Positions 5,151 through 30,454 of a stretch of 64,000 nt of DNA are shown one piece after another. The notes beneath the pieces were generated by a model. That model made no database searches. It saw only the letters and a program-made list of their open reading frames with translations, and was not told where the DNA came from. The stretch comes from Rebecca billardiae RCC1528 (Eukaryota; Protista; Haptophyta): positions 62,001 through 126,000 of the forward strand of contig OZ251226.1 in the NCBI GenBank assembly GCA_965240325.2. Reading direction: 5' to 3'. The position numbers and the translations under genes were made by a program. The number at the start of each line of letters is the position of its first letter. Position 1 is the first letter of the stretch.

Positions 5151-5617
5151 AGGCGGAGGCGGGCGCGGGCGCGGGCGGCGCGTCCGAGGGCGGCGGCTCG
5201 GGCTCTGGCGGGATGGTGAAGTCGAGCGTGTACGTGGGCGTGCACATGTCGCACAAGCCGCTCCTCCTCCGCCCGTGGCTCGCGTGCTGCTGGGTCGGCG
5301 GCAAGAACCACCACCTCGGCTACCACCGCACGGAGCGCGAGGCGGCCGCCGCGTACGACTCGTTTGCGCGGCGGCACGGCAAGAAGCTCAACTTCCCGGA
5401 CTCGGGCGCCGGCGAGTCCGGCGCGACCAAGTCGGTGAAGAGCTCGCGGTACCGCGGCGTGCACTTCAAGAAGGGGAACAAGACGCGCCCGTGGAAGGCC
5501 GTCTGCGTCGTCGGCGGGCGGCAGCACCACCTCGGCTACTTCGCGAGCGAGGAGGCCGCGGCCGCCGCGTACGACGCGTTCGCGCGGCCGCACGGCCGAA
5601 CGCTCAACGGCGTGTGA
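4391..5617 (+). CDS. AP2/ERF-domain transcription factor with two tandem AP2 domains
   Basis: Two repeats, SSVYVGV...PWLACCWVGGKNHHLGYHRTEREAAAAYD...LNFP and SSRYRGV...PWKAVCVVGGRQHHLGYFASEEAAAAAYD, match the AP2 consensus (YRGV, W.A.I, LG.F...EEAA.AYD, LNFP). N-terminus is Ala-rich with basic NLS-like stretches. Confidence 0.9.
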
Positions 5618-6240: not shown

Positions 6241-8267
6241 ATGGCGGCCGGTCGGCCCTGGCTCGTCGTCGCGGCGACGCTCGCGCTGGCGATGGCCGCG
6301 CGCATCGCGCACGTGGCCACGACCATCCTCGCGGCGCCACGCGCCATCGTCCTCGCGCCCGCCCGCCCCGCACGCGCCGACGAGGACGAGCCGGCCGCGC
6401 GCGTCGCCGCGGCGGCCGCGCTGGGCGGCGGCGGCGGCGCGGCAGCGCCGCCCGCCGACGAGGCGGCGGACGAGGCGGCGGAGCAGGCGCGCGCGAGCGC
6501 GGCGCAGCGCGACGCGGAGGACGAGGCGGCCGAGGGCGACGGCGCGCCCGACGCCGACCCGACCGCCGACCCGCCCGCGCCCGGCGTCGGCGGCAACAGC
6601 ACTCGCCAGCGGCTGAGCGCGCGCTCGCGGCTCGCGCTGCGTCTCTCCTCGCCCGAGGGGCGCGCGCTGGACGTGGGCACGCTCGAGCTCACGCCGGAGA
6701 AGTACGTGTTCGGTCAGCTCGTGCGCGTGATGCGCAACGGCCGCCCCGTCGCCGTGCCGCAGCAGCTCCCGCCCGGCGTGGCGGAGGCGGCGGGCGGCGG
6801 CGGCGGCGGCGGCGGGCCGGGCGGCGCGGACGAGGGCGCGGCGCCGCGCAGGCTGAGCCCGCTCGAGCAGCTGGCGAACGCGCTGCGCGTGCCCGCGCGC
6901 GGCGTGTGCTTCGTCGCCGCGGGCGCGTTCACGGGCGGGCGGTACACCAACAACATCTACCACCAGGCCGAGTTCGTCTGGCCCATGGTGGACGCGGCCA
7001 TCCGGGATGCGCGCGCGCCCGCCACTGTGCTCTGGCCGTTCGCGCTGCTGCCGTGGAGCAAGCAGGGTGCGCTGCGTAGTGCTGCGGCGCGTGCTGCGCG
7101 CGCGAGGGGGGGCGGGGGGAGCGGCGTCGAGGGCGGGGCGCGGAGGACGGGGCGCGCGCCCCGCGTGCTCCACGCCGCCGCGTCTGCCGCCCCTGATCGG
7201 CGCCCCTTCTGCTTCCCTTCCGTGTTCCTTCTCCGCACACGGCTGCCGCCGCCCCTGCCGCCGCCCCTGCCGCCGCCCCCGGCGCCGCCGCTGCCGCTGC
7301 CGCCCCCGCTGCCGGGGGCGCAGTGCTGGAGCTGCTGCTGCCGCTCACAGACGTGCTGGCGGGGGCAGAGGCCACGGCCACCGTGCAGCAGGCGCGCTGC
7401 ACGGCAGAGTCCGTGCCCTTCAAGGCGGTGGGCTCGGGCGGGGGCAAGGCGGGTGCGCGCGCGCGCCCGAGCGCGACGCGCTCGCGCGCGCGCGCGGCCG
7501 CCCACGCCCCCGCCCCCCCCCCGCCCCCAAACCCGCGCCGCGCGCCGCCCGGCGGCGCAGGCTACTGGCTGGACCCGCGCTCCGCCCCGATGGCGCGCAA
7601 GCTCACGCTCCGCCGGTGCCGCCGCCCGCTCCGCAACGCGAGCGCGGCGAGCACCGTCGTGCTGCTCGAGCGGCGCGCGGAGGAGGCGGCGGGCGCGCAC
7701 GGGCGCAAGCGGCGGCGCATCGCGCAGCGCGCCGCCGTGCTCGCGCTGCTGCGCGCGGCGATGCCGGGCGCGAGCGTGGAGCTGCGCTTCTCGCCCGGAG
7801 CGGACGTGCCGCTGTGCGCGCAGCTCGGCGCGTTCGCCGACGCGGCGCTCGTGCTCACGCCGCACGGCGCGCAGCTCAACAACGCTGTCTTTGCCCCCGC
7901 GCGCACCGCGCTGCTCGAGGCCATGCCATGGGCCAAGCGCAGCTACCCGGGGCACCTGGCGATGCTGCGCTACTCGGGGCTGACGCACGCGCGCGTGCAC
8001 TCCGCGCGCCCGCCCGCGGAGGACGGGCAGTGGGGCGACGGGCGGTACACCGAGGCGCAGTGCGAGGCCATCGAGCTCTGCTCGAGGTACTACCGAGATA
8101 GCGCCGAGATACACCTGCCCCCCCGGGAGCTGCACGCCGCGCTCGCGGCCGCCGCGCCCGATGGGCTGGCCGTGCGGCCGTGGGCGGAGGTGGCGCACGC
8201 GCTCGAGCGGGCGGGCTGGCGGATCGGCGAGGATGGGGGCTGGGCGCAGCGAGCGGCCGGGCGGTAG
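6241..8267 (+). CDS. Type II membrane glycosyltransferase, GT61/DUF563-like; introns 7067-7323 and 7453-7560
   Basis: N-terminal hydrophobic anchor; NNIYH motif; [24 protein letters not shown] and LLEAMP motifs typical of GT61. The GT-AG introns join the two ORFs in frame. Confidence 0.75.
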
Positions 8268-10624: not shown

Positions 10625-12515
10625 TAGGTGGGCCCACTGGCTACTGTGGGATTATAGTGGCGCAGAGCGCGAGCTCATAGCGCGGTGTTTAATTTCGTCT
10701 CGAGCTGGATTCCAGCCCCATGAGATGGCCCCTGGCCTGCCTGGTAAAAAAACCAGTGGTACATGCTGTAAATATAGGGCGTAACGGTGACCCTACTTAC
10801 TTATTGGAAATGGCCTGTGACCAATGTAACGACCATGTAACGGGCGTCTTAAACGTGATATATAGGGTCGGCAGACGTCACTTTGATATATCACTTTGAT
10901 GAGCTGATCATAGGTCTTCAGCAGCATGCACACTCATTGTCACATATACGGCGTATATGGGCACTCTGAGAATACGGGATAACGACCGTTACACCCGTGC
11001 GTTACATATACACCGCCATGCTGATCAGCATGGCTGCCATAGTATTTCAGACGGTTTCAGACTGCTCTCGTAGCAGCCGTACGGCGTGCATGTGACACCT
11101 AAGAATTTTTCCAACCCTTCTACCCTCGAAGGACGAGTCTTGCGGAGCCGTGGGCAAAGATTGAGCCTGACCGAGTCGCGGCGCCAGCCCGCCGGCCGTG
11201 GTCAAGGCAAGCAGGAGTGGGGCACGCGGCGCCGGGCACATCCAGCAGCCCGCAGCTTGAACACGGCGGACAAGGTTCGCCGAGTGCTCATCTGTGGCGT
11301 TCAAGGCAGGCACTGCTACGCATCGAATGCCTTTTCTCGTGCTCCGACCTAACCGTTGCTCTACATTGCGACCAAGCTGTGTCCGAGCTGTCCTCAGCTG
11401 GACCGTCCTCTGCCTAACTGTGCGCAACGGCCGATTCGTCGCAGCGCCGAGCTGGCTCGCCGTGGTGTGCGCGCGCGTAGCGATGTGCACTCATCACCGC
11501 TTCCTGCGTGGCAGCAGGGCAAGATATGGCTCACTGGTAAGCTGGTACGCCTGCTGACCGTGCACCGGCGTCGGCGGCGCCGCCAACGTGCTCGGGCAGG
11601 CTCACGAAGGGCTTAAATCACTGTTGAACGGATCAACTGTACTGTCCGCAGCGAGCACGGCGCACAGCGGATGACCAAGCAGAGGCGGGGCGACTGCTGT
11701 GCGGCCGCGCGGGGGAGTAGCTAGGCTCTTGAGGTACGCGTAGAGCCATGACAGGGCTCAACAAGCGCATCAGCTGCAATCTACCCGGCTCGACGCGCAG
11801 CCCGACCTCGTGCAATCGTGTGGCTCGAGGCCCTCCAAGTGGCTCGTAGCTTCCAAACACCCGAGGAGCGTCGGCACTGAGAGTTGAGTCGAGGCCGGGG
11901 AGGTGACAGACGGCACACGCATCCGCTTTGACCGCTGTTTGACCATCAGATCCTTCCCCAAGTGCCCACGATCGTGTGAACAGCCACAGCGTTCGGTCAC
12001 ACCGCACAGACTTCCGGGGACCTGACCGACGAGGCGGGCCTCCGCAGGGCCGCAGAAGTAGCTGGGCATTGCCAGGACACCATGCAGATGCTGTCCCAGT
12101 AACGTCCTGGAGTGTCCCAGTTCGTTCACGGGTGTCCCAAGCTCGCGTTGTGCACGCATTACAATCCCCAAAGCTGTTCCCGTGTTTGAACGCGCGACTG
12201 TCGGCGAGAGATGGCAGACCGGGAAGATGACCCAGGTATGAACCGTTCGCATGGCTCGTTCCAGAGGGCTACGCAGCATGCTACGGGCGTGCGGCGCAGC
12301 GTGCCTCGCATGGCAGGCGGGCAAGCGCGGCGGACAACGCGCTGACGACGCGCACAGGTCCATCCCGGTCATCGTTTTCGCGATCGATCGGCTTCCCGGA
12401 CCGGGAGTTCGGCGGCCTGGAAAAAGGGACTTCAGCGCGAGGAAAAGAGCACGGCTGCGGTCCGAAAAAGCCAGAGAGATTGTGTTTTGATTTTTAATTG
12501 CTGTGGGCCCACCTA
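10625..12515. mobile_element. Non-autonomous/degenerate DNA transposon with 13-bp TIRs and 7-bp target-site duplication
   Basis: TAGGTGGGCCCAC at 10625-10637 and its reverse complement GTGGGCCCACCTA at 12503-12515. TGGTATA flanks both sides (10618-10624, 12516-12522). Interior is lower in GC with no intact ORF. Confidence 0.75.
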
Positions 12516-12551
12516 TGGTATACAACTGTTACATTATGAGAAGAAAACAAG

Positions 12552-12567
12552 GGTGTAGACATACACC
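12552..12567 (-). promoter_or_regulatory. Histone 3'-UTR stem-loop (GGTGTA-TGTC-TACACC)
   Basis: Perfect 6-bp stem with 4-nt loop, ~27 nt past the H2A stop; the same hairpin follows the other two H2A genes. Confidence 0.75.
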
Positions 12568-12593
12568 GGAGTGGGGGAAGGCGCGTGGCTCGC

Positions 12594-13577
12594 TTAGAAG
12601 TCCTGCGACGCCTGGGTCTTGGCCTTGCTCTTCTTGGGGAGGAGCACCTGCGCGCGCCGGGCGCACGGATCGGGCGGCAGCGCACGGCGCGCATCCAGGG
12701 CGCGGTCAGCGACGCGCGACCTCAGCCCCGCGAAGAGCGCCCATCTGTGCCGCCGCGCAGGGCGGCTCGAGCATCAACCCACCCGCCACTCCCGCGCCCA
12801 TCCCGCCCCGTTCCCGCCCCGCCGCCCCGCTCACCTGGTGGATGTTGGGCAGCACGCCGCCCGACGCAATCGTCACACCGCCCAGCAGCTTGTTCAGCTC
12901 CTCGTCGTTGCGGATGGCGAGGACGAGGTGGCGCGGCGTGATGCGCTTCTTCTTGTTGTCGCGGCACGCGTTGCCCGCGAGCTCGAGCACCTCAGCCGCC
13001 ACTGCGCACATGCCACAGCCGCGCGCGACGCAGCGCGCGTCAGCCACCCGAGCCCTGCGCCACGCACGCGCGCACGCCCGGCAGCGCGGCGGCGGCGGGC
13101 TCGCGGCGCGCGCGGCGTGGGCGCGCAGTCACACGGCGCGCGCGCGGCCACGCACTGTACTCGAGCACGGCGGTGAGGTACACCGGGCCGCCAGCACCCA
13201 GCCGCTTGGCGAGGCGCATGAAGCGGAGGTTGCGAGCAACGCGCGAGACCGGGAAGGTGAGCCCGGCCTTGAGCGACTTGGTGGTCGACTTCCTGCGCGG
13301 CGAGGCGGCGAGGAAGCGCGTCGCGCGCGCGCGCCGGCCACCGGCAGCGAGGGGCGCCGCGCGTCAGCCACGAGTCAGCCCGCGCCGCCCGGCCGGGCCG
13401 AGCGGGGCGTGCGCGCCGAGCGGTGCGACCGCTCGCACTCGGCACGAGCCGTGTGCGCGCGCGCCAAAGCCGCGAGAGGCGGTGAACGCATGCGTGCGCG
13501 CGAGCGCCCGCCAAGAGCCGCGCGGCCCGCGCGCACTTCTTCTTGTCGCCGCGGCCAGCAGAGCCCTTCGGAGGCAT
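12594..13577 (-). CDS. H2AX: Divergent histone H2A variant with H2A.X-type C-terminal SQDF; exons 13577-13537, 13292-13156, 13001-12835, 12647-12594
   Basis: Spliced product [132 protein letters not shown]. Three GT-AG introns. Confidence 0.88.
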
Positions 13578-13863
13578 GGTTGCGTTCGTTCGAGGGGGGG
13601 TCGAGAGTGGCGCGACTCGGGAGTGGCGAGCCGGTGGCCGCGCTTTGAACCTCAACCGGAGCGCTCGCGGCGCAAGGACCAGTGCCGCCGCCGCGGAGCG
13701 GTTGGCGTGCTGACCGTTGCCCCGTGGGTTTCGTCAGGCTGAGCGCAGCCAGTCTCTAATTCTCGGGCCGGTGGCGAAGACCAGTGCGCCGGCCAACCGT
13801 CGTCGTTGGCTTCAAACACAAGGCCTCGCCCCTCACTACTCCAGCGCTCGCGCAGCTCAAAAG
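13578..13863. promoter_or_regulatory. Bidirectional promoter region between head-to-head H2A genes
   Basis: Only ~290 bp separate the minus-strand ATG (13577) from the putative 5'-UTR intron donor (13864) of the plus-strand H2A. Confidence 0.5.
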
Positions 13864-14174
13864 GTGTGTGCCCCGAGCGCCGCGCGCCATCGCGCCGCGC
13901 GCCGCGACGGCGTGCGAGACGCGCGCGCGGGGGCGAGGCCGCGTCGGGCGCGCGTGCGTCGACACCGGTGTCGACGCACGCGCGCCCGGCGCGCGCCCAC
14001 GCTCCTCCGCTCCGGACGCGTGGGCGCGCGCGACCCGCATTGCGCGCGCCGAGCGCTCGAGCCGCCCGCCGCGCGCGTGTGCGACGGTGTGGCTCCCGTG
14101 GCTGACCCGCCGCTGTGCGCCCCTTCTCCTCGCGCCGCGCCTTCCGCCGCGCAGCAACCCCCGCACCCGACCAG

Positions 14175-14561
14175 ATGGCGAAGACTGTGACCCCCGGTGG
14201 CCGTGGCGGCTCGAAGAAGAAGTCGACCTCGCGCTCCGCGAAGGCCGGCCTCCAGTTCCCGGTGGGCCGCGTGCACCGGCACCTCAAGCTCGGCCGCTAC
14301 TCGCAGCGGATCGGCGCGGGTGCGCCGGTGTACATGGCCGCGGTCCTCGAGTACCTCGCCGCCGAGGTGCTCGAGCTCGCGGGCAACGCGGCGCGCGACA
14401 ACAAGAAGAGCCGCATCATCCCGCGCCACGTCACGCTCGCCGTGCGCAACGACGAGGAGCTGAACAAGCTGCTCGCGGGCGTGACGGTCGCGCAGGGTGG
14501 CGTGCTGCCCAACATCCACTCGGTCCTCCTCCCGAAGAAGGGCAAGAAGGGCGCTGAGTAA
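14175..14561 (+). CDS. H2A: Histone H2A (canonical type, tail KKGKKGAE); putative 5'-UTR intron 13864-14174 ending at the ATG
   Basis: [20 protein letters not shown]...[38 protein letters not shown]...[15 protein letters not shown] is the H2A signature. Confidence 0.97.
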
Positions 14562-14697
14562 GCGTGCTCGCGCACGCCGCCTCGGCCTCTGGGCATGCCC
14601 GCCGACTGCGCCGCCGACCGCGGCCAGTCAAACCCCTCCCCGAGCCGCTGCTCCGGCAGCGCGCGGCGCCGTAGCCGCGTCTTGGCTCGACTACCTC

Positions 14698-14713
14698 GGT
14701 GTATATCTACACC
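14698..14713 (+). promoter_or_regulatory. Histone 3'-UTR stem-loop (GGTGTA-TATC-TACACC)
   Basis: Perfect 6-bp stem with 4-nt loop, ~137 nt downstream of the stop. Confidence 0.75.
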
Positions 14714-15389
14714 CCTGGCTCTTCTCGCCCATGCGGTTTACACCCCCGGTTTGCTCCGCGCCGCGCGCCGCGCCCGCCCCGCCCCGCGCGGCCTGCGGTC
14801 ATGGTGTGAGTTCACTGTGAGTCCCCGAGAACGGAATTGGCCGCCGCGGCCCCGGTGAGTCAGAGTGTTATTGTTAGCTCGGTCACGATGCAGCGTGAGT
14901 GACTGACGGCAGCAACGGTCGTAATTCGGATGCGACAAGCCGACAGCATCGTCAGTACTCAGTAGTCGAGTACGTGGCGCAGGAGTCTCACTCCGTCTCT
15001 GAGTCCGAACTAGCTAGTACTGCCGATACTCAGTACTCATACTGCAGAGCGGGAGCCGCAGCAGGCTGCCTGTTGCCCGTGCCGCGTATTATTATTGCGC
15101 GCCATTGTATTACATATCAACCATGCTGCCATATCCTTGTATTAGTGAATATATAGTATCATTGAGTCGTCAGCTGTGCTGTGTGCGACGCCGCTCGGGC
15201 GCTGCAGCGGCCGGCCACACTCGCGCACGGCCGCCGTCACGGCCCGCTCGCACGATGAGTGACGTCACGATCGGCAGCGCCAAGCAGCTCGGCGGGTCAG
15301 CGTGGAGGCAGCACGCACGTGCGCGTGGCCCGCCGCCGCCGCCGTCCGCGCCAAGCAGCTCGGCCGCATGCCGCGCGCCACGCCGGCGG

Positions 15390-16573
15390 TCACCTCTCCT
15401 CGACGGCGATGGCCGCGACGCCGGCCGCGAGGGCGCCCTCCGCCGTCGCCTGCTCCGGCTGCGGGTCCCGCCGCGACGTGGAACGGGGGCGATGGGGCGC
15501 GGGCGCGGCAGTGGATGGGGTGAGGATCTGCGTGCCCGCGCGCGGCAGCCCGCGCGTGGCTGCGCGTGCGCGCTCGCGTGCGCGCAACGGCCGCGCGGCG
15601 CGTCGCGCACCTTGGCGTGCGCGCTGCCGGCCGGCTGCGGCTGCTCGTCCGGCTGCGCCGACTTGGCGTCCGCCCGTCGCCGCCCGAGCGCGTCGACGCA
15701 CTTGTCGATCGAGACGGTCTCGGAGATGGCGTCCATCTTGGGCACGTACGTGGTGAAGTGCGGCGTGGCGAAGTGCGCCTCGAGGTGCGCCATCGACGCC
15801 CACTCCTCCGTGATCACGAAGCGCGTCGGCGAGTCGGCCGACTTGACAAAGTTGTACTTGAGCACGCCGGGCTCGCGCCACGTGTGGTGCGCGAGCTTCT
15901 CCGCCATGGCGAGCCACTCGGCCTGGTTGGCCTCAGGCACGTCCTTCGTCACGATCACGTGCACCGCGCCGGGCGCCATCGGCGCGCTCGCCGCGTCCTC
16001 CGCCCGGGCCTTCTCGGCGGTCGCGGCGTCGTCCGCCTTGGTCGTGAGCAGCGGGTGCAGCGACTTGCGCCCGTCGACGTAGACGGCGACCCACTCGGCG
16101 AGGCGCAGGCCCAGGCGCTCGCAAGCGAGCTTGTCGTGCTCGTTCCGCGGCTGCTTCGCCACCACCGCGCCGTAGTGCAGCGTGTGGATCTTGTCGACGT
16201 AGTCGGTCACGCCGAAGCTGAGGAAGCCAAAGTTCATCAGCACGGTCGACATGGCGAGGCAGGACATCTCGGCGCCGCCGCCGTGGCCGCCCTGCGAGGA
16301 GAAGACGGTGCACAGCTTGCCGTCGCACTTGTTCCAGTTGTCCGCGGCGAACTCGTCCCACCACTTCTTCATGCGCCACGCGATGCCGCCGAGGTTGGTC
16401 GGCGTGCCGACAGCGAGGCCGTCCGCCCACAGCACGTCTGCGTGCGTGCAGTCCTCGGTGGAGCGCAGGCGGATCTCGTGGCCGGGGATCTGCGAGGCGC
16501 CCGCGGCGACGAGCTTGCCCATCTCCGACGTGCAGTCCGTGTTCGAGTGGTAGAAGACGAGGATGCGGCCCAT
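15390..16573 (-). CDS. WrbA-like flavodoxin-fold NAD(P)H oxidoreductase fused to an ABM (antibiotic biosynthesis monooxygenase-like) domain; intron 15610-15459
   Basis: Flavodoxin/WrbA part: MGRILVFYHSNTDCT, ADVLWADGLAVGTPTNLGGIAWRMKKWWD, GKLCTVFSSQGGHGGGAE, LHYGAV, ACERLGLRLAE. ABM part: TWREPGVLKYNFVKSADSPTRFVITEEWASMAHLEAHFATPHF. Confidence 0.88.
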
Positions 16574-17056
16574 GTTCTCGGCGTGGACAGGTGGACTGCG
16601 ATGGTGGCCGTGTGCGTTTTGGCTTGACCTTCGAGCGGGCTCGTCTCTGATTCCACGATTCCAAAGATCCTCGCCGCCGAGGATCAGGGTACTGTCTATA
16701 GCCGTAGGGCAGAGTACTGAAGACAGCTTCCTCATAGGGCGGCGGACGCCGATTTCGGAGCGGGATTGATCGAGTTTTGCCAATGGCGAAGCCGCATTTA
16801 CCCGAGAGCAATCAAGGGCGCCTGGGAGGCGGCGGCGGCCGAGGGCTGCGATGCCAAAGCGCGCGCGATGATTGGCCAGGCCCCGCCTCCGGTGGTGCTG
16901 CGAGGTAAATCCGCCGCCTATCTGCCGCTGTCCCGTTTTGCATCCGGCCATATGCGGTACCACCGGCGGGTAAACGGCGGATACCTGCCGGCGCACGTCC
17001 CACAACCGCCCTGCGACACTCGAATGCAGCCACCTGCCACGCAGCACGCGCACGCC

Positions 17057-19832
17057 ATGACCGCGACCACGAACCGCCCGCTCCCGCTCGTCGGCCTCGA
17101 CACGCTCGGCTCGGGCGACGAGACGGAGGACATCACCAAGACGATCCGCACGGCCATCCGCGCCGGCGTCCGCCTCTTCGACTGCGCCTCGCTCCACGGC
17201 AACGAGGAGGAGGTCGGCGCGGCGCTGCGCGCCGCGATCGACGCGGGCGAGGTGTCGCGCGAGGAGCTCTACGTCGTGGCCAAGCTGTGGTGCGCGGACG
17301 CGGCGCCGGAGGACGTTGAGACCGCGTGCCGCCGCACGCTCGACAACCTCGGCCTCGACTACCTCGACGAGTACGCCATGCACTGGTGCGCGCGCCGCGC
17401 CGCGCCGCGCCGCGCGCAAGTCTGCGCGCGCTCGTGAGGCCGGAGCCCCACCGCGCGCACGCGCGCCCGCGCGCTCCCGTCTCACGCGCGCCGCGCGCTC
17501 CACTGCGCGCCGCCCACCGCCGCGCGCAGGCCCGTGCGCATGCGCCCCGGCTCGAACGCGCTCACCTTCTCGCTCGTGCACGGCGCGGAGCGCGCGCCGA
17601 TCGCTCAGACGTACGGCGCGATGGAGAGGCTGGTGGAGGGCGGGCTCGTGCGCGCGCTGGGCGTGAGCAACATGGACGCGCGCATGCTCACCGAGCTCGC
17701 CGCCGACTGCGCCGTCAAGCCGCGCTCCCTCCACGTCGAGGCGCACCCGTTCCTGCCACAGCCGGAGCTGCTGGGCGCGTGCGGCGCGCTGGGCGTGCGG
17801 CTGGTGGCGCACAGGCCGCTCGGGCAGGTGTGCGCGGCGCCGCGCGCGTGGGGGCGCGCGGCCCCGGCCGACGGCGCGCTCACCCGCGTGCCCCGCCCGT
17901 GCCACGATCTCGCGCCGCGCCCGCGCGCAGGAGGACGGCGGCGCGCACACGGACCTGCGCCTGTACCCGGCTGTGCAGGCGGTCGCGCTGGAGGCGAACA
18001 AGTCCGCGGCGCAGGTGCTGCTGCGCTGGGGCGTGCAGCGCGGCGCGAGCGTGGTGCCGCGCTCGGCGCCCACCACCGCCCTCGGCGTGCTCGACTGGCA
18101 GCTCTCCGCCGAGCAGATGGGCCGCCTCGACGCGCTCGCGCGCGGCCTCCGGTTTGCGCGCGTGCCGTGGTTCGACTTTGACGCGCGGCCGCCGCTCAAC
18201 GTGAACGTGGCGCCGCCGGGGCAGCCGCTGCTCAAGGCGGGCGAGGAGGACGCGCGCGGCTTCTACCGCAACACGTTTGGGCGCGACGGCAAGCCGCTGC
18301 ACACCGAGGTCGTCATCCGGCGCGGGCTGCTCCAGCGCGACGCGCTCGCGGCGCACGCGAAGCACTTCCTGCCCGAGAAGTGCCACGGCGCGCCCATCCA
18401 CGTGCTGACGGACAGCGTGGTGGACAAGATCTACGGCGAGCAGGTGGTCGCCGGGCTGCGCGCGGCGGGGCTCGAGGTGCACAAGACCGCGATGCCCTCC
18501 GACCTCGCCGACGCCGCGGGCGAGCCCTCGACCGAGCACCACAAGACGATGGCCGTGCTGAGCGCGTGCGCGGACGAGATCCTGTGCAACGGCATCAACA
18601 AGAACTCGGCGATCGTCTCGCTCGGCGGCGGCGTGGTGAACAACCTGGCGGGCGTGCTCGCGGGCATGCTGTACCGCGGCATCGCGCTCGTGCACCTGCC
18701 CACCACCACCATGTCCACCTTCGACCCGGCGCTCGACTTCAAGCAGGCGGTCAACCACCCGCTCGGCAAGAACCTGCTCGGCTGCTACTACCCGGCGAGC
18801 ACGATCGCGATCGACCCGGACGCGCTCTCGACGCTCAGCGAGCGGCACATCCTCAACGGCATCTCGGAGGCGCTCAAGCACGGGCTGACGCAGTCGCGCG
18901 AGCTCACCGACATGATCGTCGACCCGCTGCGCGCCGGCCGGCCGCTCACCGACGGGCAGTACCTCGAGCGCATCTGCAAGGCGGCGCTCGAGATCAAGGC
19001 GCCCACACTCGACGCGTACGAGAAGACGGACTACAACGAGGTGTGCCCGCAGTACGGCCACGCGATCGGGCACGCGGTGGAGCACCTCTCGTGGAGCGGC
19101 CCGCTGCACCGCCCGCTGCTGCACGGCGAGGCGGTGGCGATCGGCATGTGCGTCTCCGCCGAGATCGCGCTGCGCAAGGGCATCTGCACGCAGGCGGTCG
19201 TGGACGAGCACTACGAGCTGATCGGCGCGACCGGGCTGCCCGCGTTTGTGCCGCGCTCGATGGACGCGGACAGGCTGGTGCGCCAGATGCGCTTCGACAA
19301 GCACACGCTCAAGAGCCCGGCGATGGGGCTGTGCGCCGCGATCGGCGGCATGGCCACCGACGCGGAGCGCGGCACCTACTTCTTCGAGACCAGCGCCGAC
19401 GAGCTGCACGCCGCGCTGCAGGCGAACGCGGCGCGGCGCGACCTGACGGAGGGCTGCGTGCAGTGCGCGCCCGAGCCGGCGCGCGCGCCTGAGGCCACCG
19501 CCGGCGCCGACGCCCACGCGCCGCCGCCCGCCGCCGCCTCCGCCGCCGGCACGCGGCCCGCCTCGCCCGACCCCGATGCCGAGGCCTCGCGCCCCGCCTC
19601 GCCCGAGCCCTTCGACCCCTCGGAGCTGCCCGCCGTGCAGCTGCCGCCGCCGCTGCCGTTTGTGCGCGCGGCCGACGAGGCGGTGCTCAACAAGTACCGC
19701 ACCGAGTACGCGCAGTACCGCAAGGGCGGCGCGTGGGGCTCGCGCGGCGAGCTGACCAAGCTCGCCAAGCGCGCGGGCACGATGAAGCCGGCGGCGCCGG
19801 TGGCCAGCCTGGTGGTCGGCGCATCCGCATGA
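17057..19832 (+). CDS. Aldo-keto reductase fused to a sugar-phosphate cyclase (DHQS superfamily, 2-deoxy-scyllo-inosose synthase-like); introns 17386-17529 and 17828-17930
   Basis: AKR part: PLVGL, AIRAGVRLFDCA..GNEEEVGAALR, REELYVVAKLW, LGLDYLDEYAMHW|P, MERLVEGGLVRALGVSN, EAHPFLPQPEL, KSAAQVLLRWGVQRG..VVPRS. Cyclase part continues in the same frame: SLGGGVVNNLAG, YRGIALVHLPTT, FKQAVNHPLGKNLLGCYYP, GISEALKH, YGHAIGHAVE, LHGEAVAIGM, MRFDK. Confidence 0.9.
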
Positions 19833-20502
19833 GCGCGCAGCGGCGCACTCCGCGCAGCGCCGCGCGAGCGGGCGGATAGTCATAGTCACGCCTCACGGCG
19901 GCCGGGGCGCCGTCAGTGGCGGGGCGAGTGTATGTAGTTGTACGCAACGCGACGCGGCGTCAATTACACTCACCACACAGCTAGCTATAGTGCGCTGCAG
20001 AGAGACTGAGAGAGCGCCAGCAGCCTCTAAGTAGCAATGACGGGCGAGACGAGATTGATGACTGCTACGACTAGCTAGTACGGGCAGAACTGTCGTACGT
20101 ACAGACTGGCGACTGCGGGCCGCCTCACTAGTGAGTCACTCACTCACTGCGGCGCGCAGCGCGCGCTGTCAGGCAGCCGCGCGCGCTGGCAGCGCTCCCG
20201 CTACTGACGGTCCGCGCCCGGGGAGCCTCGTCAATGAGTCCGCGTCCGCCCTATATAGATATATATAATATATATATTGATAGATGACCGCGTTCCGCGG
20301 TCCTTTTCCGTAGAACGAACGTAGTTCAGGGCCCGCGGTGGCGGTGCACCCTCCATCGCAGTCGTCTATTGACAGACCCGGAGTTGCATGCCCGTACAAC
20401 TAGACTCCAGCGGCGCGCCGCCGCCCGCCGCGCCCGGGGCGCGGGCCCATCGGCGCACTTCGCAGCCGCCGGCGCGGCGCCGATTGTGTACAGGCGGATG
20501 CG

Positions 20503-20816
20503 ACGAGGCGTGATCGACGCATGAGCGCGATTCCACGTGCACGCCAGGCCACGCGAAGCTGACAGCCAGGGAGCACGGTGCGGGGCCGCGGATTCGTTCG
20601 GGCCGCTGCTGCTGACTGACCGCTGAGTCCCGCCGCGGGTCACCGCGCACCGCGGCAGCGCCAGGATAGTTAGGTGATTTGCACTGGTCCGAGTAGGGTT
20701 CGACCAGCGCCTGCGCGACGGCCGACAGGCGGGCGCGAGGCGTGATCGACGCATGAGCGCAACTCGACGTGCACGCCAGGCCACGCGGAGCTGACAGCCC
20801 GAGGGAGCACGGTGCC
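20503..20816. repeat. Two diverged ~80-bp direct repeats (20503-20581, 20736-20816)
   Basis: CGAGGCGTGATCGACGCATGAGCGC...CGTGCACGCCAGGCCACGCG.AGCTGACAGCC..GGGAGCACGGTGC occurs twice. Confidence 0.85.
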
Positions 20817-22669
20817 GAGGTCGGAGGTGCGACTGGGCACCAGTCACGGATCGTTCGCGCACGCCGCGCGTGCACGGGCTGACACACCTCGATCAGGCTC
20901 GGCACGCGTTGCAGAGGCACAGCCAGCTCTGGGGACGTCACGCACCACCGTCGCCCGCGCAGCTCGTCCTCCTCGTAGAGTACCGTTCAGTTCCGAGGCG
21001 TAGCCCTCGCTCAGAGTCGACCGTCGACGATGGACTCGGATCGTCGGCGCTCCCCGGAAAGGCATGGCAAGGGCGGCGCGTGGTGAAGTCGAAGACTCAG
21101 AGATCGATCAGTCCGGCATCAGGCGCCGCTGCCCCCGAGCTTGCGAGAGCCCGAATACAGGGCGGCTGCCGCGGCGCGGCCGGGGCGCCCCGGCGCCGAC
21201 CGGCGCGCGGCCGCGCGCAGGCATCCGGCGCCGACCGGCGCGCGGCCGCGCGCAGGCATCGACACGGGGCGGCGGGGGCGCGCGGAGTGAGCGGGGGCAC
21301 GAACGCGATGTCGACGGCAGTCGGGACCCGCCGCAGCCGCGCGCTCCAGGCGCAACTCGCCGCGCGCACGTGCCCATCGCCGTCCTCACCCGTCGGTCGC
21401 TCGTGCGGCTCGCCCCCTCTCGCGGAGCCAGTGAGTCTCGCCGCAGCCGCGGCAACCAAGGTTTGGCTTTGCTGGGCAGCCGGCTCCACTCGTGTCAGAT
21501 AGTATTGAGATTCGCCGAGGTTGGCCCATCGGCTACTGACCCTTGCCTCGTCGGCTCCTGATACAGACACGGCGCGATTGAATAGTTGATTCAACTGATT
21601 CAAGGGACGTACATGGTCACATCGGTTCGCGGCAATCTCCATCTAGATACGTCATCGCTCCTTGGACCTTGCTGCAATCTCATTGGCCGGAAAAATCGCT
21701 TGTAACGGTTCGTTACGTTAGGGATCCTAAAGGGCGTGAAGTTTTTTGGACGGGCGTCACTCCACGCTTTACTATGAACTTGCCGTGCGCGCGACCTTTT
21801 TCGGCCGTGATGCATGTTAGAGAGGCGCGGCGGGTCTCAAAATTCGAAACTCGGTCTCCTCCAGCCATGAAAATCGTCCCCCGTCCCTTTTTTCTTGATC
21901 AAAGATCTTTTTGAAACGTTGTTCGGGCCCGCTGGTGCGGGCTCCACGCTGCGCGCTCCGCCCTGCACCGCGGGCCATGATGATGGCGCTGTATATATTC
22001 CCTGCTGCGTCCGCCGCCAGTCTGGCAGTCCGCAGATCGCGAGTCGTCCGGGTCGACTCGATCAGTGCATGCCGTGGGCGTGTGCCAGCCGAGGTGGGTC
22101 ATCACGCGCGGTGATCCCGGCCCCGTCAGGGGACTCACGTCGGAGCCGCCGGCACTCACTAGCACTGTCTACGGCAGCAGCTGCTACTTGCTAGCAGTAA
22201 CAGTGCATGATGATCATGATGGCGGCGCGGCGGACCGGACCGTCGTCGTACTATACGCGGCGACGATATTCGAGATCCGCGCGCCTGCAGTACTGTAGTG
22301 TCGTCACTTATAGCCGTTGTCGTAGTAGCGCGCATCAGGGCGAGGGCCGAGGCGCTGATGCCAGTTGCGCGCCACGTTGGTCATCGACATCGGCAGTCTG
22401 AGTCTCGCGTCCGCGCGCGCCGCCGCGCGCGGCCCGGCGCGCGCCGGGCGCAGAGTGCCACCAGCATCGGCGTCGCCACGGGGCGCGCGATCCCACTGGT
22501 CACTGGTGCATGGTGCCGAGGCGCGGTGCTGTGCAGCCTGCGCATCACGGAGCACGTTGGTGCGGCGAGAGGCCGAGGGAGAGCGGGGTCCGGCGCCGCG
22601 CCCGCCGTGCAGCGGCGCAGGCGCCGTGCGCGCCCGGCCTGGAGGCCCGAGGCCCGAGCCAACCCGCTC

Positions 22670-23635
22670 TCAACGGCGGCGGCGGCGGCGTGCGGCCGGC
22701 GGCGCCGGCGGTGACGACTCGGGCGGCGCGGGCGCGGGCTCTGGCTCGGCGGCCGCGGCCACGGGCGCGGGCGCGCGCTCGCGGCTGCGCTTGCGGCCGC
22801 CCGCGCCGCGCGCCGCCGGGCTCGGCGCGCCGCCCGCGCCCGCCGCCGCCGCCGAGCGCCCCGCGCGCGAGCGCTTGGGGCTCGGCTTGGCGCGCGCGCG
22901 CGGCGAGGCGGAGGCGGAGGCGGCACGGCGCTTGCCCGCCGCCGCCGAGCCGCCACGGCCGCCGCCGCCGGCGCGCACGCGCGCGGCTGGCTTGTTGGCG
23001 CGCGAGGGCGCGCGCGCGCGGCTGCGGCCTTGGCCAGCGTGCGCACCCGCCGCCGCCGCCTCGCCGCTGCCGCCGCCGCGCTCGTCATGCGCTGGGCCCG
23101 ACCGATCGGGGCTGTCCTCCTCCTCCTCCTCCTCGTCCTCGTCCTCCTCCTCCTCCGCCATCGCCTCCTCCTCCGTGCCGCTGCCGAGGCCGCTCATCTC
23201 CGCCTCCGACGACGACTCGTCGGAGTCCGTCTCGCTCCACGCGGACCGGCGGCGGCGGCGCGGGCGCGCGGCGGCGGCGCGTCGCGGCCGCTGCGCGCGC
23301 CGCCGCCGCGCGCCGTAGTCCAGGTCGTCGTCGTCGTCGAGGTCGTCGTCGTCGTCGTCGTCGTCGTCGGAGCCCGCCGCCTCCACCTCCGCGGCCGCGT
23401 CGTACAGCTGGTCGTCGTCGTCGTCGTCGTCGTCGTCGACGGCGCCCGCGGCGCCGCCCGCGGCGCCGCCGAGCCGCGCGGCCGCCGCGGCCGCGGCCGC
23501 GCGCGGCCGCCGGCCGCTGGGAGCGGCGTCGTCGTCGCCCCAGCGCTCGGCGTGGTGCCGCGCCGCGCGCGCCGCGCGCGCGCTCGGCGCCGGCGCGCCG
23601 CCGCCCACGCGCCGCCCGGCGAGCGAGCGCAGCCG

Positions 23636-23669
<34 letters not shown>

Positions 23670-23879
23670 GCGCTGGGGCGCGCGTGCTCGCGCGCAGGGC
23701 TCGCGCCGCGCGCGCCGGCGCGCGGCGCGGCGCCACCGGCCGCGCCGCCCGCCGCCTCGTCCTCGTCCTCCTCCTCGTCGCTGCCGATGATGACGCGGCG
23801 TGCGCCCGCGCGGCGCCCGGGCGGCGGCGGCGGCGGCGGCGGCGGCGGGTGCGCGGGCGAGCCCTCGCGAGCGTGCGCC

Positions 23880-23918
<39 letters not shown>

Positions 23919-24097
23919 GCCGCGTCGTCGTCGTCGTCCGCGAGCAGGTGCACATGCGAATTTCGACCGACCAGCTCCCACCCGCCGCCGTCGGCGGTGG
24001 TGGCGGCGGCGGCGGCGCCCGCGGGCGGCGCGCCGGCGCGCGCGCTCGCGGCGAGCGCGCGCGCCTGCGGCCCGGCGACGCCGTGCCCGAGCCGCTG

Positions 24098-24137
<40 letters not shown>

Positions 24138-26113
24138 GGCGCGCGCCGCTGCGCCGCCGCCGACGGCTCGGGCAGCGCGTCGCGCGCGCACAGCTCGGCG
24201 CGCGCGCGCGCGCGCACGGCGGGCGCGGCGTGCAGCGCGGCGGCGGCGGCGGCGGCGGCGGCGTGCCCGCGCGCGTACCCCGCCACGGCCTCGCGGCGCC
24301 GCGCCTGCACGGCCAGCGGGTACGGCGCGCCCTCGAGCGACACAAGCAGCGGCGCGCGCGCGGGCAGGCTGCGCGCGCGCGGCGGCGGCAGCAGCGGCGG
24401 CGGCGCGGCGGGCGCGGCGGGCGCGGCGGGCGCGGCGGGCGCGGCGGGCGCGGCGGGCGCGGCGGGCGCGGCGGCGGGCGCGGCGGCCGCCGCCGAAGCC
24501 GCCGCCGCCGCCACCGCCGCCGCTGCCGCCGCGCGCGCGCCGCCGCGCGCGCCACCGCCGCGCCGCCGCCCGGCCGCCGCGGGCTCGGGCGGCGGGCCGG
24601 CGACAACGACGGGTGGCGGCGGCGGCGCGAGCGCGGCGCCACCGCCACCGCCGCCGCCGCCGCCGCCGCCCGGCGCAAGCAGGCCGCCGAGCGCGGCGTC
24701 CGCGCCCGCGTCCGCGTCGAAGGGCCCGGGCCGCGTGTAGTCCGCGTCGAGGAACTGCTCGATCGGCGGAGCGCTGCTCACGCCGCCGCCGCCGCCGCCG
24801 GGCGCGCCGGCGCGTGCGGCCGCGGCCGCCGCCGTCGGCTCGGCGGCGGGCGCGGCGCCCGCGGCGCGCGGCGGCGGCGGGTGCGCGCGCGACGCGGCCG
24901 CGCCGGTGGCGAGGACGGTGAAGCCGCCCGCCGTGTCTGCCACGACGAGCCGCTCGCCCGTCGCGTCCCAGCTGCGCGCGCGGCAGCGGGGCGGGGGCGC
25001 GGCCGCGCGGGCGGGCGGCGCGCGCGTGAGCCGCAGGCGCGGCGCTCAGCGCGCGGGCACGGCGCGCGCACACGCACGGCGCGCGGCAGCCGCGCGCAGC
25101 AAGCACGCGCGCGCACACACACGCACCCACGCGCACACACACGCGCGCAGGCAGGCAGGCAGGCAGGCCGAGCACCGGCCGCGTGCGCGCGCGCGCCCAC
25201 CGGCCGTCCACCAGCGCATAGTCCTCTGGCGCGATGTCGCCCAGCCGCGCGCGCAGCAGCCGGCCCGCCGCGCCGCCGCCGTCCGCGTCGCCGCCCGCGC
25301 CGCCGGGCGCGCCGTACGTGTGCAGCGCCTCGCCGCTGCTCACGTCCCACAGCACGAGCACGCCGTCGTACCCTGCACCCGCGCGCGGGCGCGCGCGCGC
25401 GCGTGGGCGTGTGTGTGGGTGCGGCGCAGTGGGTGGGCGCGCGGCGGCTGCCGCGCGCCGCCGCCCGGCTCGGCGCCGCGCGTGCCGCGCGCACCCGCCG
25501 TCATCACCACCTCGGGCCAGCGCGGGTGCGTGTCCGTCACGAAGATCTGCTGGCTGTGCCCGCTGCGACGGCGGAGGGGGGCGGCGGCACGGGCGCGCGC
25601 CAGCCAGCGCGGCTGAGCACCGCCCGGCCGCGGCCGCACGGCGCGCGCGCGCACCCCGCCGCGCGCGCGCGCGCGCGCACCGCAGCACACGCAGCCTTGC
25701 GCCCGACTCCGCCTCCCACACGTGCAGCGCGCCGTCCGTGTGCGCGGTCACGGCGAGGCAGTCGGCCAAGCCCGCCCACACCGCCATGTTGACCAGCGGC
25801 GGCTGCTGCGCCGCGGGCGCGCCCGGCCGCGCTTGCTCGCTGCGCGCCACGCGCGCACGCGCGCGCGCGCGCCCGGTGCGCCGCACGGGAGGCGGAGGGG
25901 GCGCCGCGCCGCGCCTCAGCTCAGCTCAGCGGGGGCGGCGCGCGGCGGCGGGCCGGGCGGGCGCGGCGCGGCGCGGCGCGGCGCTTGAACGCACCCGAGT
26001 GTCTTGAGCTGCCACTCCTCCGCCATGCTCGCGGCGGCGCACGCCCACGGGGCGCCGGAGACGAGCGCTGCGCGCGCGGCCAGCAGCGCGCTCGCGGCGG
26101 CCGCGCTGAGGCG

Positions 26114-26146
<33 letters not shown>

Positions 26147-28695
26147 ACGGCTGCTGCCGCCGCCGCCGCCCGCCGCGAGCGCGCGCTGCTCGTTGAGCCG
26201 GCCGGAGCGCGCGGGCTTGCGCGCCGCCGCGCGCCAGATCCGCGCCTGCGGCCGCGGGGCGCCCACGCGCCCACGCACACACACGCGCACACACACGCAC
26301 ACACACGCACACACACACACGCACACACACGCACACACACGCCCAGCCGAAGCGGTGACGGCGACGCGCGCACGCAGCGGGGGTGAGCGCGGGCGCACGC
26401 GAGGGCGCGCGCGCACGCCCGCACGCCCGCGGCCGCGCGCACCTGCCCGTCCCTCGAGCCGGTGAGCAGCCGCGTGCTGCCGCCGTGCGCGCGCGACCAC
26501 TGCGCCGAGGTGACGTCGTGTTTGTGTCCGTCCAACCGGCGCACCTTGTACGCGCGCGCGCGCGCGGTGAGCGGGCACGCGCCGACGCGCGCCGCGCCGG
26601 CCGCGCCCGGGGCCGCCGCCGCCTCGGCGTCGAGCGCCCACTGCGCGCTCGCCGCGCGGCGCGGCGCGGCGCGGCGGGCGGCGGCGGCGCGTGAGCCGCG
26701 CGCGCCGCCGCGTGTCGCGAGCGCGCGCGCGCTCGCGCGGCGGGCGCCGCCGCCCGCCGCGCGGCCGCGCGCCCCGCGGCCGCACCTGCAGCTCAAGCTC
26801 GGCGATCAGGTCCGCCTCGGCCGCGGACGCGAGGCCGAACACCGTGGCGGTGCACTCGGAGGTGCCGACGGCGAAGCGGGTGCCGCCCGCGCTCCACGCC
26901 ACACAGAAGGTGCAGCACGCCTGCGCGCACCGCACGCAGCACACACGCACGCGCACACGCACACGCACACGCACACACGCACACGCACACGCACACATAC
27001 ACGCACACGCACGCACACACGCACACGCACACGCACACGCACACACACACGCACACGCACACACACACACACGCACGCACGCACAAACGGGGAGAGAGAG
27101 AGGGCGGCGTGCGGGGCGGCGAGCGCGCGTGAGGCCCGCCGCCACGCGCGCGTGCCGCGCGGCGCCGAGGGCGTTGGCGCGTTGGCGCGTGCGTGCGCGC
27201 GTGCGTGCGTGCGTGCGCGCGGCCCGTCACCTCGTGGCTGAAGGCGGCCACCGACTTGAGGGGCAGACGCGTGAGCTGCCAGCCGCACACGGCGCCCAGC
27301 GCGCTCAGGCCCTCGCCCACGCCCTCGCCGCCGGACGCAGCGGGGGTGGGCGCCGCAGCGCCGGCGGCCGCGGGCTGCTGCGCCGCGCCGCCCGCCGCAG
27401 CCTCGGGCGGCGCGTGCGTGTGCGTGTGCGTGTGCGTGTGCGCGTGCGCGTGCGCGTGCGCGTGCGTGTGCGCGGCCAGGAGCAGCCCCGCAGGCGAGAG
27501 GGCGCTGCCCACGATCCACTCGGAGAGGCTGGGGCGCGCGGGCTGCGCGCCGCCGCCGCCGCCGCGCGCGCCGCCGCCGCCGCCACCGCCGCGCCTGGCC
27601 GCCGCCTTGCCGCCGCCGGCCGCCGCGCGCGACGCCGGCTGCTTGCGCGACGCGCCCGCGGCCGGCGGCGCCGCCGCGCCGCCCGCCGCGGCCGCGTCGG
27701 CGGCGAGCGACGCACCGGGCGCGAGCCCCGCCGCCGCGGCCAGCCACGCCGCGGGCGGCGGCGCCGTGTACAGCAGCGCGTTGCCTGCGCGCGCGCGCGC
27801 GCGCGCACGCACGGCACGCGCGCGCCGCGTCGGCCGCTGCAGCCGAGTGCGCGCCCGCGCCGCGTGCGGCGCGCGGCGCGCGGCGCGCGCGCGTTGCGGG
27901 GTGCGCGCACGGCGCACGCACCGGCCTGGTCGGTGGCGAGGAGCGCTGGCAGCGAGGCGCCGTCCCACGGGCGCCAGTCCACCTGCGCGCGGCGCGTCGG
28001 CGCGCGGGCGGCGCGTCAGCTCGGCTGCGGCGCGCGAGCGCACGTCGGTGCGCGGCGCAACCATAGCGCGCAACCCGCGCGCGCGGCGGCAGCGCGGCGG
28101 CGGCGCGGCGGCGGCGCGCGGCGGCGGCGCGCACCGTTTGCACCGGCGCGGTGGCGCGGAGCACGGCGATGCAGCGCGGCGGGCCGCACGCGCCGTGCAG
28201 CCCGGCCGCACCCGCCTCGCCCGGCGGCTGCTGCGCCGCGCCGCCCGCGCCCGCGCCCGCGCCCGCGCTGCCGCCCGGCTGCAGCGGCGGCCTGAGCAGC
28301 CAGATGCGCACACTCATGTCGTTGGAGGCGGTGGCGAGCAGCCCGTCGTCGGCGGAGATGGCGATGTCGGTCACGTCCATCGTGTGCCCGCGCAGCGTGT
28401 ACAGCAGGTACCCCGAGCGCGCGCACCACACCTTCACCAGCGCGTCGTCGGCCGCGGTCACGAGGGCGGTGCCGCCGTGGTCGAAGGCGCAGCAGTACAC
28501 CGCCTCGGCGTGGCCGCGCGCGCCGTGCGCGCGGCGGAGGCCCTTGAAGGCGAGCTTGGCGGAGGGGCGCACGCGCGCGCGCGACGCGGCGACCTCGCGC
28601 GCGCACAGCTGCGAGCAGATCGGCGCGGGCGCGCCCGACGCGCACGCCGACGCGGCGGACGCGGCGAGCGCGCGCGCCGTGCGCGCCGCCGCCAG

Positions 28696-28729
<34 letters not shown>

Positions 28730-29394
28730 AGCGCGAGCGCGGCCGCGGCGGTGCCGGGCAGCGCGCCGGGCGCGCCGCCGCGCACGCCCGGCGGCGCCTC
28801 GCCCAGCACGCGCCCGTCGAGCAGCGTCGTCACACACAGCCCGCCCGGCGCCGCGGCCGCGCTGAGCGTGAGCAGCCGGTCTGCGAGCCGCTGCAGCTGC
28901 CCGCGACCCGCCGCGCCGGCGGCGCCGCCGCCGCCCGCCGCGGCCTCGAGCTCGTCCAGGGAGGCGGCGAGGCGGACGAAGGGTAGCGGCGAGTGCGCAC
29001 CCACCGACGCCGCCTCGGGCGGCGCGGGCGTGTCAATCAGTGCGCCGCCGCCGCCGCCGCCGCCGGCAGCGCGTGCGGACGCGCCCGCCGCGTGCGCCGC
29101 CGCCGCCGCCGCCGCCGTGGCGGCGGCGGCGCGCGCGCGCGCATCGTCGTCGGCGGTAGCGCGCTCGGTGTGGCGAGACGCGCCAAGCCCGGCCGCCGCG
29201 CGCGAGACCACGGCGGGCGGCAGCAGCGCCGCGTGGCACATCGCGCCCGCCAGCTGGTCGAGCAGAGCGCACTGCTCCGCGTCAGACGCGACGGCGCGGA
29301 GGTGGCGCAGGGCGAGCCACGTGAGCTCGGAGGTGGAGGCGCGCGGCGGGCCGACGAGCGAGCGCCCGCCGGCGGCCGCGTGCGCATCGGCCAT
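22670..29394 (-). CDS. BRWD/PHIP-like WD40-repeat protein, multi-exon, with an acidic/low-complexity C-terminus
   Basis: N-terminal SELTWLALRHL; GHAEAVYCCAFD..GTALVTAADDALVKVW...LLYTLRGHTMDVTDIAIS..LLATASNDMSVRIW; GHKHDVTSAQWS..LLTGSRDG; GHSQQIFVTDTHP..VVMTAG|YDGVLVLWD; PIEQFLDADY. This order matches the BRWD1/PHIP WD region. Several GT-AG introns contain CA/CG repeats; exon boundaries were not all resolved. Confidence 0.78.
26940..27085. repeat. (CA/CG)-type microsatellite (GCACAC)n within an intron
   Basis: Run of ACACGC/ACAC units. Confidence 0.85.
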
Positions 29395-29986
29395 CTTCGG
29401 CCGCCAGCCGCGCGTGCGCGAGCGGCAGGGCGAGCGAGTGGCTCCCCAAGCGCTTCGGTACGGGCGGCCCTCGCCTCCCTCCCGCGCGCTTCAGACCTGA
29501 GCTCGCTGCGCGGGCTGAGTGGCCAAGCGCGGCTGGCCGCTGGACACGTGCGACGGTTGGTCCAGTCCATTATTTGCTGCGCGCGCATTTGAAATGCCAC
29601 CGGTCAATCGGTCATGTTGGCGCGCCGCGCGCGGCCGATTCTCAGCGACAACGAACTTCGCCGCACACTACTGTACACAGCATCATCCGATGATTCAATC
29701 GTCTCGATAGCCAGGTCATAGAGTGCCCACTGGTCCGCCGAACCGAGGCCAGCACTAGTCAGCCAGTGAGGGCGGTTTAAGTATAATTTACAAAGTACAA
29801 CGGCGGCGCGCGCGAGCGGCGGGCGCCTGGGGCAGAGCCAATCATTGGCCAGGCGAGAGACACGCGGCAGCGCCGGCAGTTGGGGCCGCGCGGCGGGCGC
29901 GCGCGCCGGCTGCCGCGCGGCGGCGGCGGCGGCGCGGCGGGCCCGTGACCCGGTTACGGTGGCCCACGACTCGAGACAACGCAGAG

Positions 29987-30002
29987 GGTGTAGATATACA
30001 CC
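29987..30002 (-). promoter_or_regulatory. Histone 3'-UTR stem-loop (GGTGTA-TATC-TACACC)
   Basis: Same hairpin ~51 nt downstream of the H2A.X stop. Confidence 0.75.
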
Positions 30003-30052: not shown

Positions 30053-30454
30053 TTAGAACTCCTGGCTCGAGCCCGCCTTCTTCGCGCCCTTCTTGGGCAG
30101 CAGCACCGAGTGGATGTTGGGCAGCACGCCGCCCTGCGCGACCGTCACGCCCGCGAGCAGCTTGTTCAGCTCCTCGTCGTTGCGCACGGCGAGCGTGACG
30201 TGGCGCGGGATGATGCGGCTCTTCTTGTTGTCGCGCGCCGCGTTGCCCGCGAGCTCGAGCACCTCGGCGGCGAGGTACTCGAGGACCGCGGCCATGTACA
30301 CCGGCGCACCCGCGCCGATCCGCTGCGAGTAGCGGCCGAGCTTGAGGTGCCGGTGCACGCGGCCCACCGGGAACTGGAGGCCGGCCTTCGCGGAGCGCGA
30401 GGTCGACTTCTTCTTCGAGCCGCCACGGCCGCCGGGGGTCACAGTCTTTGCCAT
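30053..30454 (-). CDS. H2AX: Histone H2A.X (C-terminal SQEF); putative 5'-UTR intron 30701-30468
   Basis: Core identical in protein to the H2A at 14175; ends [13 protein letters not shown], the SQ-E-hydrophobic gamma-H2AX motif. Confidence 0.95.

Follow-up and report, generated by a model that had tools for sequence, protein, structure and literature searches.

A conserved hairpin behind the histone genes of pavlovophyte algae is probably a lineage form of the histone mRNA 3' stem-loop

Do the histone mRNAs of haptophyte algae end in a stem-loop of the kind known from animals? The question is raised by a stretch of the genome of the haptophyte Rebecca billardiae RCC1528 (NCBI GenBank assembly GCA_965240325.2, contig OZ251226.1, positions 62,001 to 126,000 of the forward strand; 64,000 nucleotides (nt), here called the window), in which three histone H2A genes are each followed by the hairpin GGTGTA-TRTC-TACACC, 16 nt in length. 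The hairpin does not represent a new system: the element is known, and what is new is its variant in this lineage. It is probably the form that the histone mRNA 3' stem-loop takes in the pavlovophytes (Pavlovales, Haptophyta), most likely bound by a protein of the SLBP type.

The histone stem-loop is the textbook 3' end of a non-polyadenylated mRNA, and how it evolved beyond the animals is still under study. The histone genes of Volvox and Chlamydomonas carry 3' palindromes that are taken to act like the animal stem-loop, and the histone stem-loops of protists have reportedly been surveyed. As in these algal and surveyed protist cases, the genes studied here are non-animal histone genes, some with introns, that bear a short conserved 3' hairpin; the lineage and the sequence differ. 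A search of the accessible literature returned no description of a haptophyte histone stem-loop, and no published description was found of the GGUGUU histone hairpin of prymnesiophyte type that is compared below. In a recent eukaryote-wide survey of stem-loops (Zhao, Bond and Ni Leathlobhair 2026, bioRxiv 10.64898/2026.10.14.759114), the protist set is confined by its methods to groups without haptophytes.

The pattern GGTGTATRTCTACACC has exactly three matches in the window, one past the stop codon of each H2A gene and each in sense orientation (Table 1). In 100 dinucleotide shuffles of the window the expected number of matches was 0.01 on average, and none of the shuffles reached five. With up to two mismatches allowed, the only additions were two of these sites read again on the opposite strand, as they are nearly palindromic. 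When the window was scanned more broadly, by structure, for GG....T.T.....CC hairpins whose stem has 6 bp, the same three hairpins came out together with a G-U-rich site at 5297, which was taken as a chance match. The hairpin folds at -6.9 kcal/mol alone and is the minimum-free-energy element in all seven contexts that were folded, those of the window copies being 56 nt long; at 44% GC, it is kept unchanged in a window of 72% GC. An earlier note on this DNA, made from its letters, had reported the same hairpin in sense after all three stops, at about 27, 137 and 51 nt and varying only at loop position 2. The measured distances agree to within 1 nt, and the sole difference among the copies is indeed an A or a G at that position. 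The hairpin behind each of the three H2A genes is therefore real.

Relatives of R. billardiae carry the same element. In Pavlovales sp. CCMP2436 (locus L001), the identical 16-mer stands 167 nt after an H2A stop and 95 nt after the stop of an intron-containing H2A.X-type gene, and it recurs behind H2A genes on three pavlovophyte-like metagenome contigs (L002, L003, L021; 65-68% GC). The 16-mer is thus invariant over at least four pavlovophyte sources, in DNA that ranges from 51 to 72% GC. The element is not specific to H2A, because the 3' untranslated region (UTR) of the CCMP2436 H2B gene (L029), which was located with the Emiliania huxleyi H2B as query, carries the same stem, with the loop TTTC, 84 nt past the stop. 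The stem-loop consequently lies behind H2A and H2A.X-type genes in the window and behind H2A, H2A.X-type and H2B genes in CCMP2436. H3 and H4 genes were found in none of the loci examined, except for an H3 fragment of 37 codons, which lies at the edge of L020, and a chimeric H2A/H4 open reading frame (ORF) in L029. The latter, at 7552-7710 on the minus strand, is short, with the N-terminus of an H2A and a C-terminus that resembles H4 (TLYGFGG); it is probably a pseudogene of chimeric origin, and no GGTGTA-type hairpin follows it.

The 16-mer might instead be without function, either a remnant from the time when the genes were duplicated or a match by chance. Genes 2 and 3 have indeed been duplicated recently, their coding DNA being 97.6% identical. 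When six 3' flanks (three from the window and three from CCMP2436) were compared, however, the best local alignment was centred on the hairpin in 15 of 15 pairs, in agreement with the claim of the earlier note that the flanks are otherwise unrelated. The flanks share nothing besides the hairpin, even between the near-identical genes 2 and 3. Together with the low expectation by chance, the identity of the 16-mer in other species and the presence of the stem behind another histone class, this already contradicts a leftover or chance origin, to which we attach almost no probability.

Within the window and about 137 kb of haptophyte loci from NCBI, hairpins of the class GGTGT[AT]-T.T.-[AT]ACACC occur exclusively after histone genes. 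The association holds inside the lineage and not universally, because the core also matches bacterial repeats and viral contigs. A metagenome scan with the 18-mer CGGTGTATRTCTACACCC gave 13 matches, all within bacterial coding repeats (peptide GAVYVYTR) and none near a histone gene, and the 18-mer CGGTGTATGTCTACACCC in JGI metagenome contigs L004-L016 was set aside as a coincidence of these GAVYVYTR-coding repeats, unrelated to histones. A viral scan with the pavlovophyte form (17-mer core) returned 39 contigs, most of them of 26-40% GC and with a longer stem (GGGGTGTATTTCTACACCCC); no histone motif lies upstream in any of the 39, and they were likewise judged unrelated.

A sister form of the hairpin is found in a sister class within the Haptophyta. 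In E. huxleyi CCMP1516, the H2A gene and five dispersed H2B loci are trailed, 20-26 nt past the stop, by GGTGTT-TCTA-AACACC and then ACCC; neither H3 nor H4 occurs within 10 kb of these H2B loci. Contigs L018, L019 and L020, whose H2A is 87-90% identical, have GGTGTT-TTT[T/A/G]-AACACC followed by ACC(C)A, with an A/C-rich stretch before it. This prymnesiophyte type, GGUGUU-UNUN-AACACC with ACC(C), shares with the pavlovophyte form the first five stem pairs, the geometry and the U at loop positions 1 and 3, and both stand behind H2A and H2B genes. It differs in its U-A closing pair and its animal-like ACCC 3' flank, which is confined to the prymnesiophyte type among the haptophyte hairpins compared, and its distance from the stop is shorter (20-63 nt). 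In an alignment of 11 sequences, comprising eight pavlovophyte rows and three GGTGTT-type rows from metagenome H2A hairpins, pairing is complete, at 66 of 66 stem cells. The eight close with A-U and the three with U-A, which amounts to one compensatory change, and the two basal G-C pairs, including the second stem G, are invariant in 11 of 11. Every copy has U at loop positions 1 and 3, the loops being TATC, TGTC, TTTC, TCTA, TTTT, TTTA and TTTG; positions 2 and 4 vary, and position 4 is C, A, U or G among the haptophyte copies. The alignment also shows a conserved CGC some 20 nt upstream, which was judged not credible because the DNA is so GC-rich. The proposal that this is a lineage-specific form of the histone stem-loop has thus held up: the 16-mer is invariant among pavlovophytes, its stem recurs behind H2B in CCMP2436, and a single compensatory change separates it from the E. 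huxleyi type.

These data also bear on the level at which the palindrome acts. It could act as DNA, by binding a dimeric factor or by forming a cruciform, and in this way bring transcription to an end or coordinate the expression of the histone genes; it is indeed an inverted repeat that lies outside coding sequence every time. The asymmetric loop, however, is sense-oriented in 9 of 9 pavlovophyte copies and in all copies of the E. huxleyi type, whichever genomic strand they occupy, and the closing pair has been altered on both sides with pairing kept. Because of these two features a role as DNA is very unlikely; the sister form is, moreover, matched by the RNA covariance model for histone stem-loops.

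That model, Rfam RF00032 (Histone3), describes the metazoan element, and the likeness of the pavlovophyte hairpin to it is of several kinds. Each is found, sense-oriented, in the 3' UTR of several classes of core histone gene, and each has a 6-bp stem with two basal G-C pairs and a 4-nt loop in which positions 1 and 3 are U. SLBP reportedly reads the second stem G, loop U1 and U3 and the 5' flank, and is said, from its structure with RNA among other work, not to read the basal pair or loop C4. The list of retained SLBP contacts given in the earlier note therefore stands in part: loop U1 and U3 are read and kept, the basal pair and loop C4 are not among the residues read, and position 4 varies in haptophytes. 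Unlike the metazoan element, the pavlovophyte hairpin has A, G or U at loop position 2, lies as far as 180 nt from the stop and is also present on an intron-containing gene.

By homology, the hairpin would be transcribed within the H2A 3' UTR, where the RNA should fold as a 6-bp stem and 4-nt loop, GGUGUA-URUC-UACACC. A protein of the SLBP type would most likely bind it and, once bound, would define or protect the mRNA 3' end; cleavage a few nucleotides past the stem would yield an mRNA without a poly(A) tail, and histone mRNA levels would thereby follow DNA replication, as they do in animals, in green algae and in other protists. A crude motif scan for SLBP in the window and a few loci gave nothing credible, and Rfam had no match for U7 at gathering scores in the 64 kb of the window.

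Several observations weigh against the reading of the hairpin as a histone stem-loop. RF00032, whose gathering score is 34 bits, had no match to the pavlovophyte form at the gathering threshold in the window, nor at E<=10 in searches of 2.5 kb, 66 nt and 86 nt, so the earlier expectation that the standard model would miss it was correct; in favour of the reading, the GGTGTT-type hairpins are recognised, though weakly, with 20-22 bits and an E-value of 4e-4 (86 nt searched). The pavlovophyte stem, GGUGUA/UACACC, has purines at positions 4 and 6 and a closing A-U pair, in contrast to the canonical GGYYYU/ARRRCC with its closing U-A. The 3' flank is CCY rather than the metazoan ACCCA, and the 5' flank in the window is CUCC or CCUC, without the A run of the metazoan CCAAA; lower-GC relatives in the Pavlovales have kept CAAAC or CCAAUC. 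The metazoan purine-rich downstream element, which pairs with U7, has no equivalent in the pavlovophyte flanks, which are pyrimidine-rich, and a general test for enriched 5-mers after the stem was not significant, its value being equalled in 1431 of 2000 shuffles. Stop-to-hairpin distances in the Pavlovales are long and variable (26-180 nt). The covariation, finally, represents one evolutionary event only.

A different result came from a position-restricted test, the only one of the two downstream tests to reach significance. TCTC starts at +10 to +12 after the stem in six of nine pavlovophyte flanks, which none of 500 shuffles matched; without the L002 ortholog, it does so in five of eight flanks, which 4 of 500 shuffles reached. 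TCTC is tentatively put forward as a candidate processing element only, and the UCUC of the RNA, about 10-14 nt after the stem, may substitute for the purine-rich downstream element of animals.

The long distances and the missing ACCCA flank and purine-rich element are also what would be expected if the hairpin were a histone-specific RNA element of the 3' UTR that acts in stability, translation or S-phase decay, possibly bound by SLBP, with ordinary cleavage and polyadenylation downstream and cleavage of the U7 type lost or never present. An AT-rich stretch after gene 1, in a window that is otherwise rich in GC, is a possible poly(A) site. An entry from MMETSP, whose libraries are poly(A)-selected, falls inside the protein cluster of the E. 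huxleyi H2A; this is weak evidence because histone mRNAs often leak into such libraries. Stem-loop and polyadenylation features coexist in early fungi, according to Zhao et al. (2026, bioRxiv 10.64898/2026.10.14.759114). Nothing speaks directly against downstream polyadenylation, but the fixed position of UCUC suggests a processing site near the hairpin, and we regard this alternative as unlikely, the histone stem-loop in its processing role being the preferred reading.

What the pavlovophyte histone stem-loop offers is a natural mutant series: the basal G-C pairs and the U at loop positions 1 and 3 have been kept, while changes have come to the closing pair, to a further position of the stem and to the flanks on either side, and the kept and changed positions therefore reveal which contacts are dispensable. 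In animals, SLBP and 3'hExo depend on stem positions 4 and 6 and on the 3' flank. The hairpin is accordingly a test case for the co-evolution of SLBP and RNA. It is possible, though doubtful, that the pavlovophytes have re-specified the entire histone 3'-end system, with the positions used by animal SLBP and 3'hExo changed, UCUC in place of the U7 target and intron-containing H2A.X-type genes served as well; in its wider form, this proposal would have viruses of GGUGUU-type algae (E. huxleyi and its relatives) copying the hairpin to time their expression, of which the CRESS-DNA virus genomes described below, with histone-type hairpins behind Rep and Cap, are a hint. If such a re-specification had taken place, it would imply that SLBP has co-evolved and that another factor recognises the downstream sequence. 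Since Rfam Histone3 misses the form entirely, histone 3' ends in these algae go unannotated without a lineage-specific model.

Table 1. Positions of the hairpins, the candidate downstream elements and the H2A genes in the window (position 1 is its first letter)
Feature	Coordinates	Strand	Details
Hairpin copy 1, GGTGTA-TGTC-TACACC	12552..12567	-	26 nt past stop of H2A.X-type gene 1
Hairpin copy 2, GGTGTA-TATC-TACACC	14698..14713	+	136 nt past stop of H2A gene 2
Hairpin copy 3, GGTGTA-TATC-TACACC	29987..30002	-	50 nt past stop of H2A.X-type gene 3
TCTC, candidate downstream element 1	12538..12541	-	+11 to +14 after stem 1
TCTC, candidate downstream element 2	14723..14726	+	+10 to +13 after stem 2
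TCTC, candidate downstream element 3	29973..29976	-	+11 to +14 after stem 3
H2A.X-type gene 1	12594..13577	-	Exons 13577-13537, 13292-13156, 13001-12835, 12647-12594; 3 GT-AG introns; 132 residues, C-terminal SQDF
H2A gene 2	14175..14561	+	Intronless; 128 residues; without SQ motif
H2A gene 3 (H2A.X type)	30053..30454	-	Intronless; 133 residues; C-terminal SQEF

The identity of the three genes in Table 1 rests on separate lines of evidence. Genes 2 and 3 score above the cut-offs for Pfam PF00125 (Histone) and PF16211 (Histone_H2A_C), and the closest named protein to gene 2 is the H2A of Pavlovales sp. CCMP2436 (95% identity). Gene 1 was called H2A by tblastn with the gene 2 protein, by its spliced translation of 132 residues and by H2A sequence motifs. 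No H2B, H3 or H4 gene was found in the window beside the three H2A genes. The near-identity of genes 2 and 3 in coding DNA, set against C-termini that differ in the presence of SQEF and UTRs that are unrelated except for the hairpin, suggests gene conversion confined to the coding region.

Two features of the flanking DNA stand out. The divergent promoter of about 600 bp between genes 1 and 2 holds a 54-nt palindrome without spacer at 13940-13993, with 27-nt arms that are 96% complementary; no counterpart was seen upstream of gene 3. The region right after hairpin 1, at 12452-12551 on the minus strand, is strikingly AT-rich for a window of 72% GC and includes AATTAAAAATCAAAAC. An alternative poly(A) region is known in mammalian H2AX, and by analogy this stretch could serve as one for the intron-containing H2A.X-type gene 1.

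Hairpins of histone type also occur in viruses, as seen in IMG/VR contigs retrieved by a scan for the E. huxleyi-type hairpin. Six complete circular genomes of circular Rep-encoding single-stranded (CRESS) DNA viruses (L072, L073, L074, L079, L081, L085; 2.0-3.5 kb) carry an A-rich flank and GGTGTT-TNTN-AACACC, usually followed by ACC. The hairpin lies 9-41 nt past the nearest long upstream ORF, mostly Rep or a putative Cap rich in Arg. All six genomes have terminal overlaps of 99-123 nt, five have an origin (ori) hairpin with AGTATTAC, and four have a Viral_Rep domain, a Rep helicase domain (Pfam) or both. RF00032 gives these hairpins 24-31 bits, below its gathering score and above the cellular algal copies. 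No published account of histone-type stem-loops in CRESS-DNA viruses was found. They may be viral copies of the host histone mRNA 3' end that serve, for example, to couple expression to S phase.

The same hairpin, GGTGTTTTT[C/G/T]AACACC followed by ACC, recurs after unrelated genes on further IMG/VR contigs of 25-37% GC (L080, L069, L071/L084, L082/L083, L086), several of which are labelled as giant-virus metagenome-assembled genomes; L080 has it four times, all on one strand. Mimivirus transcript ends follow a hairpin rule, which these contigs recall, but here one common sequence is used.

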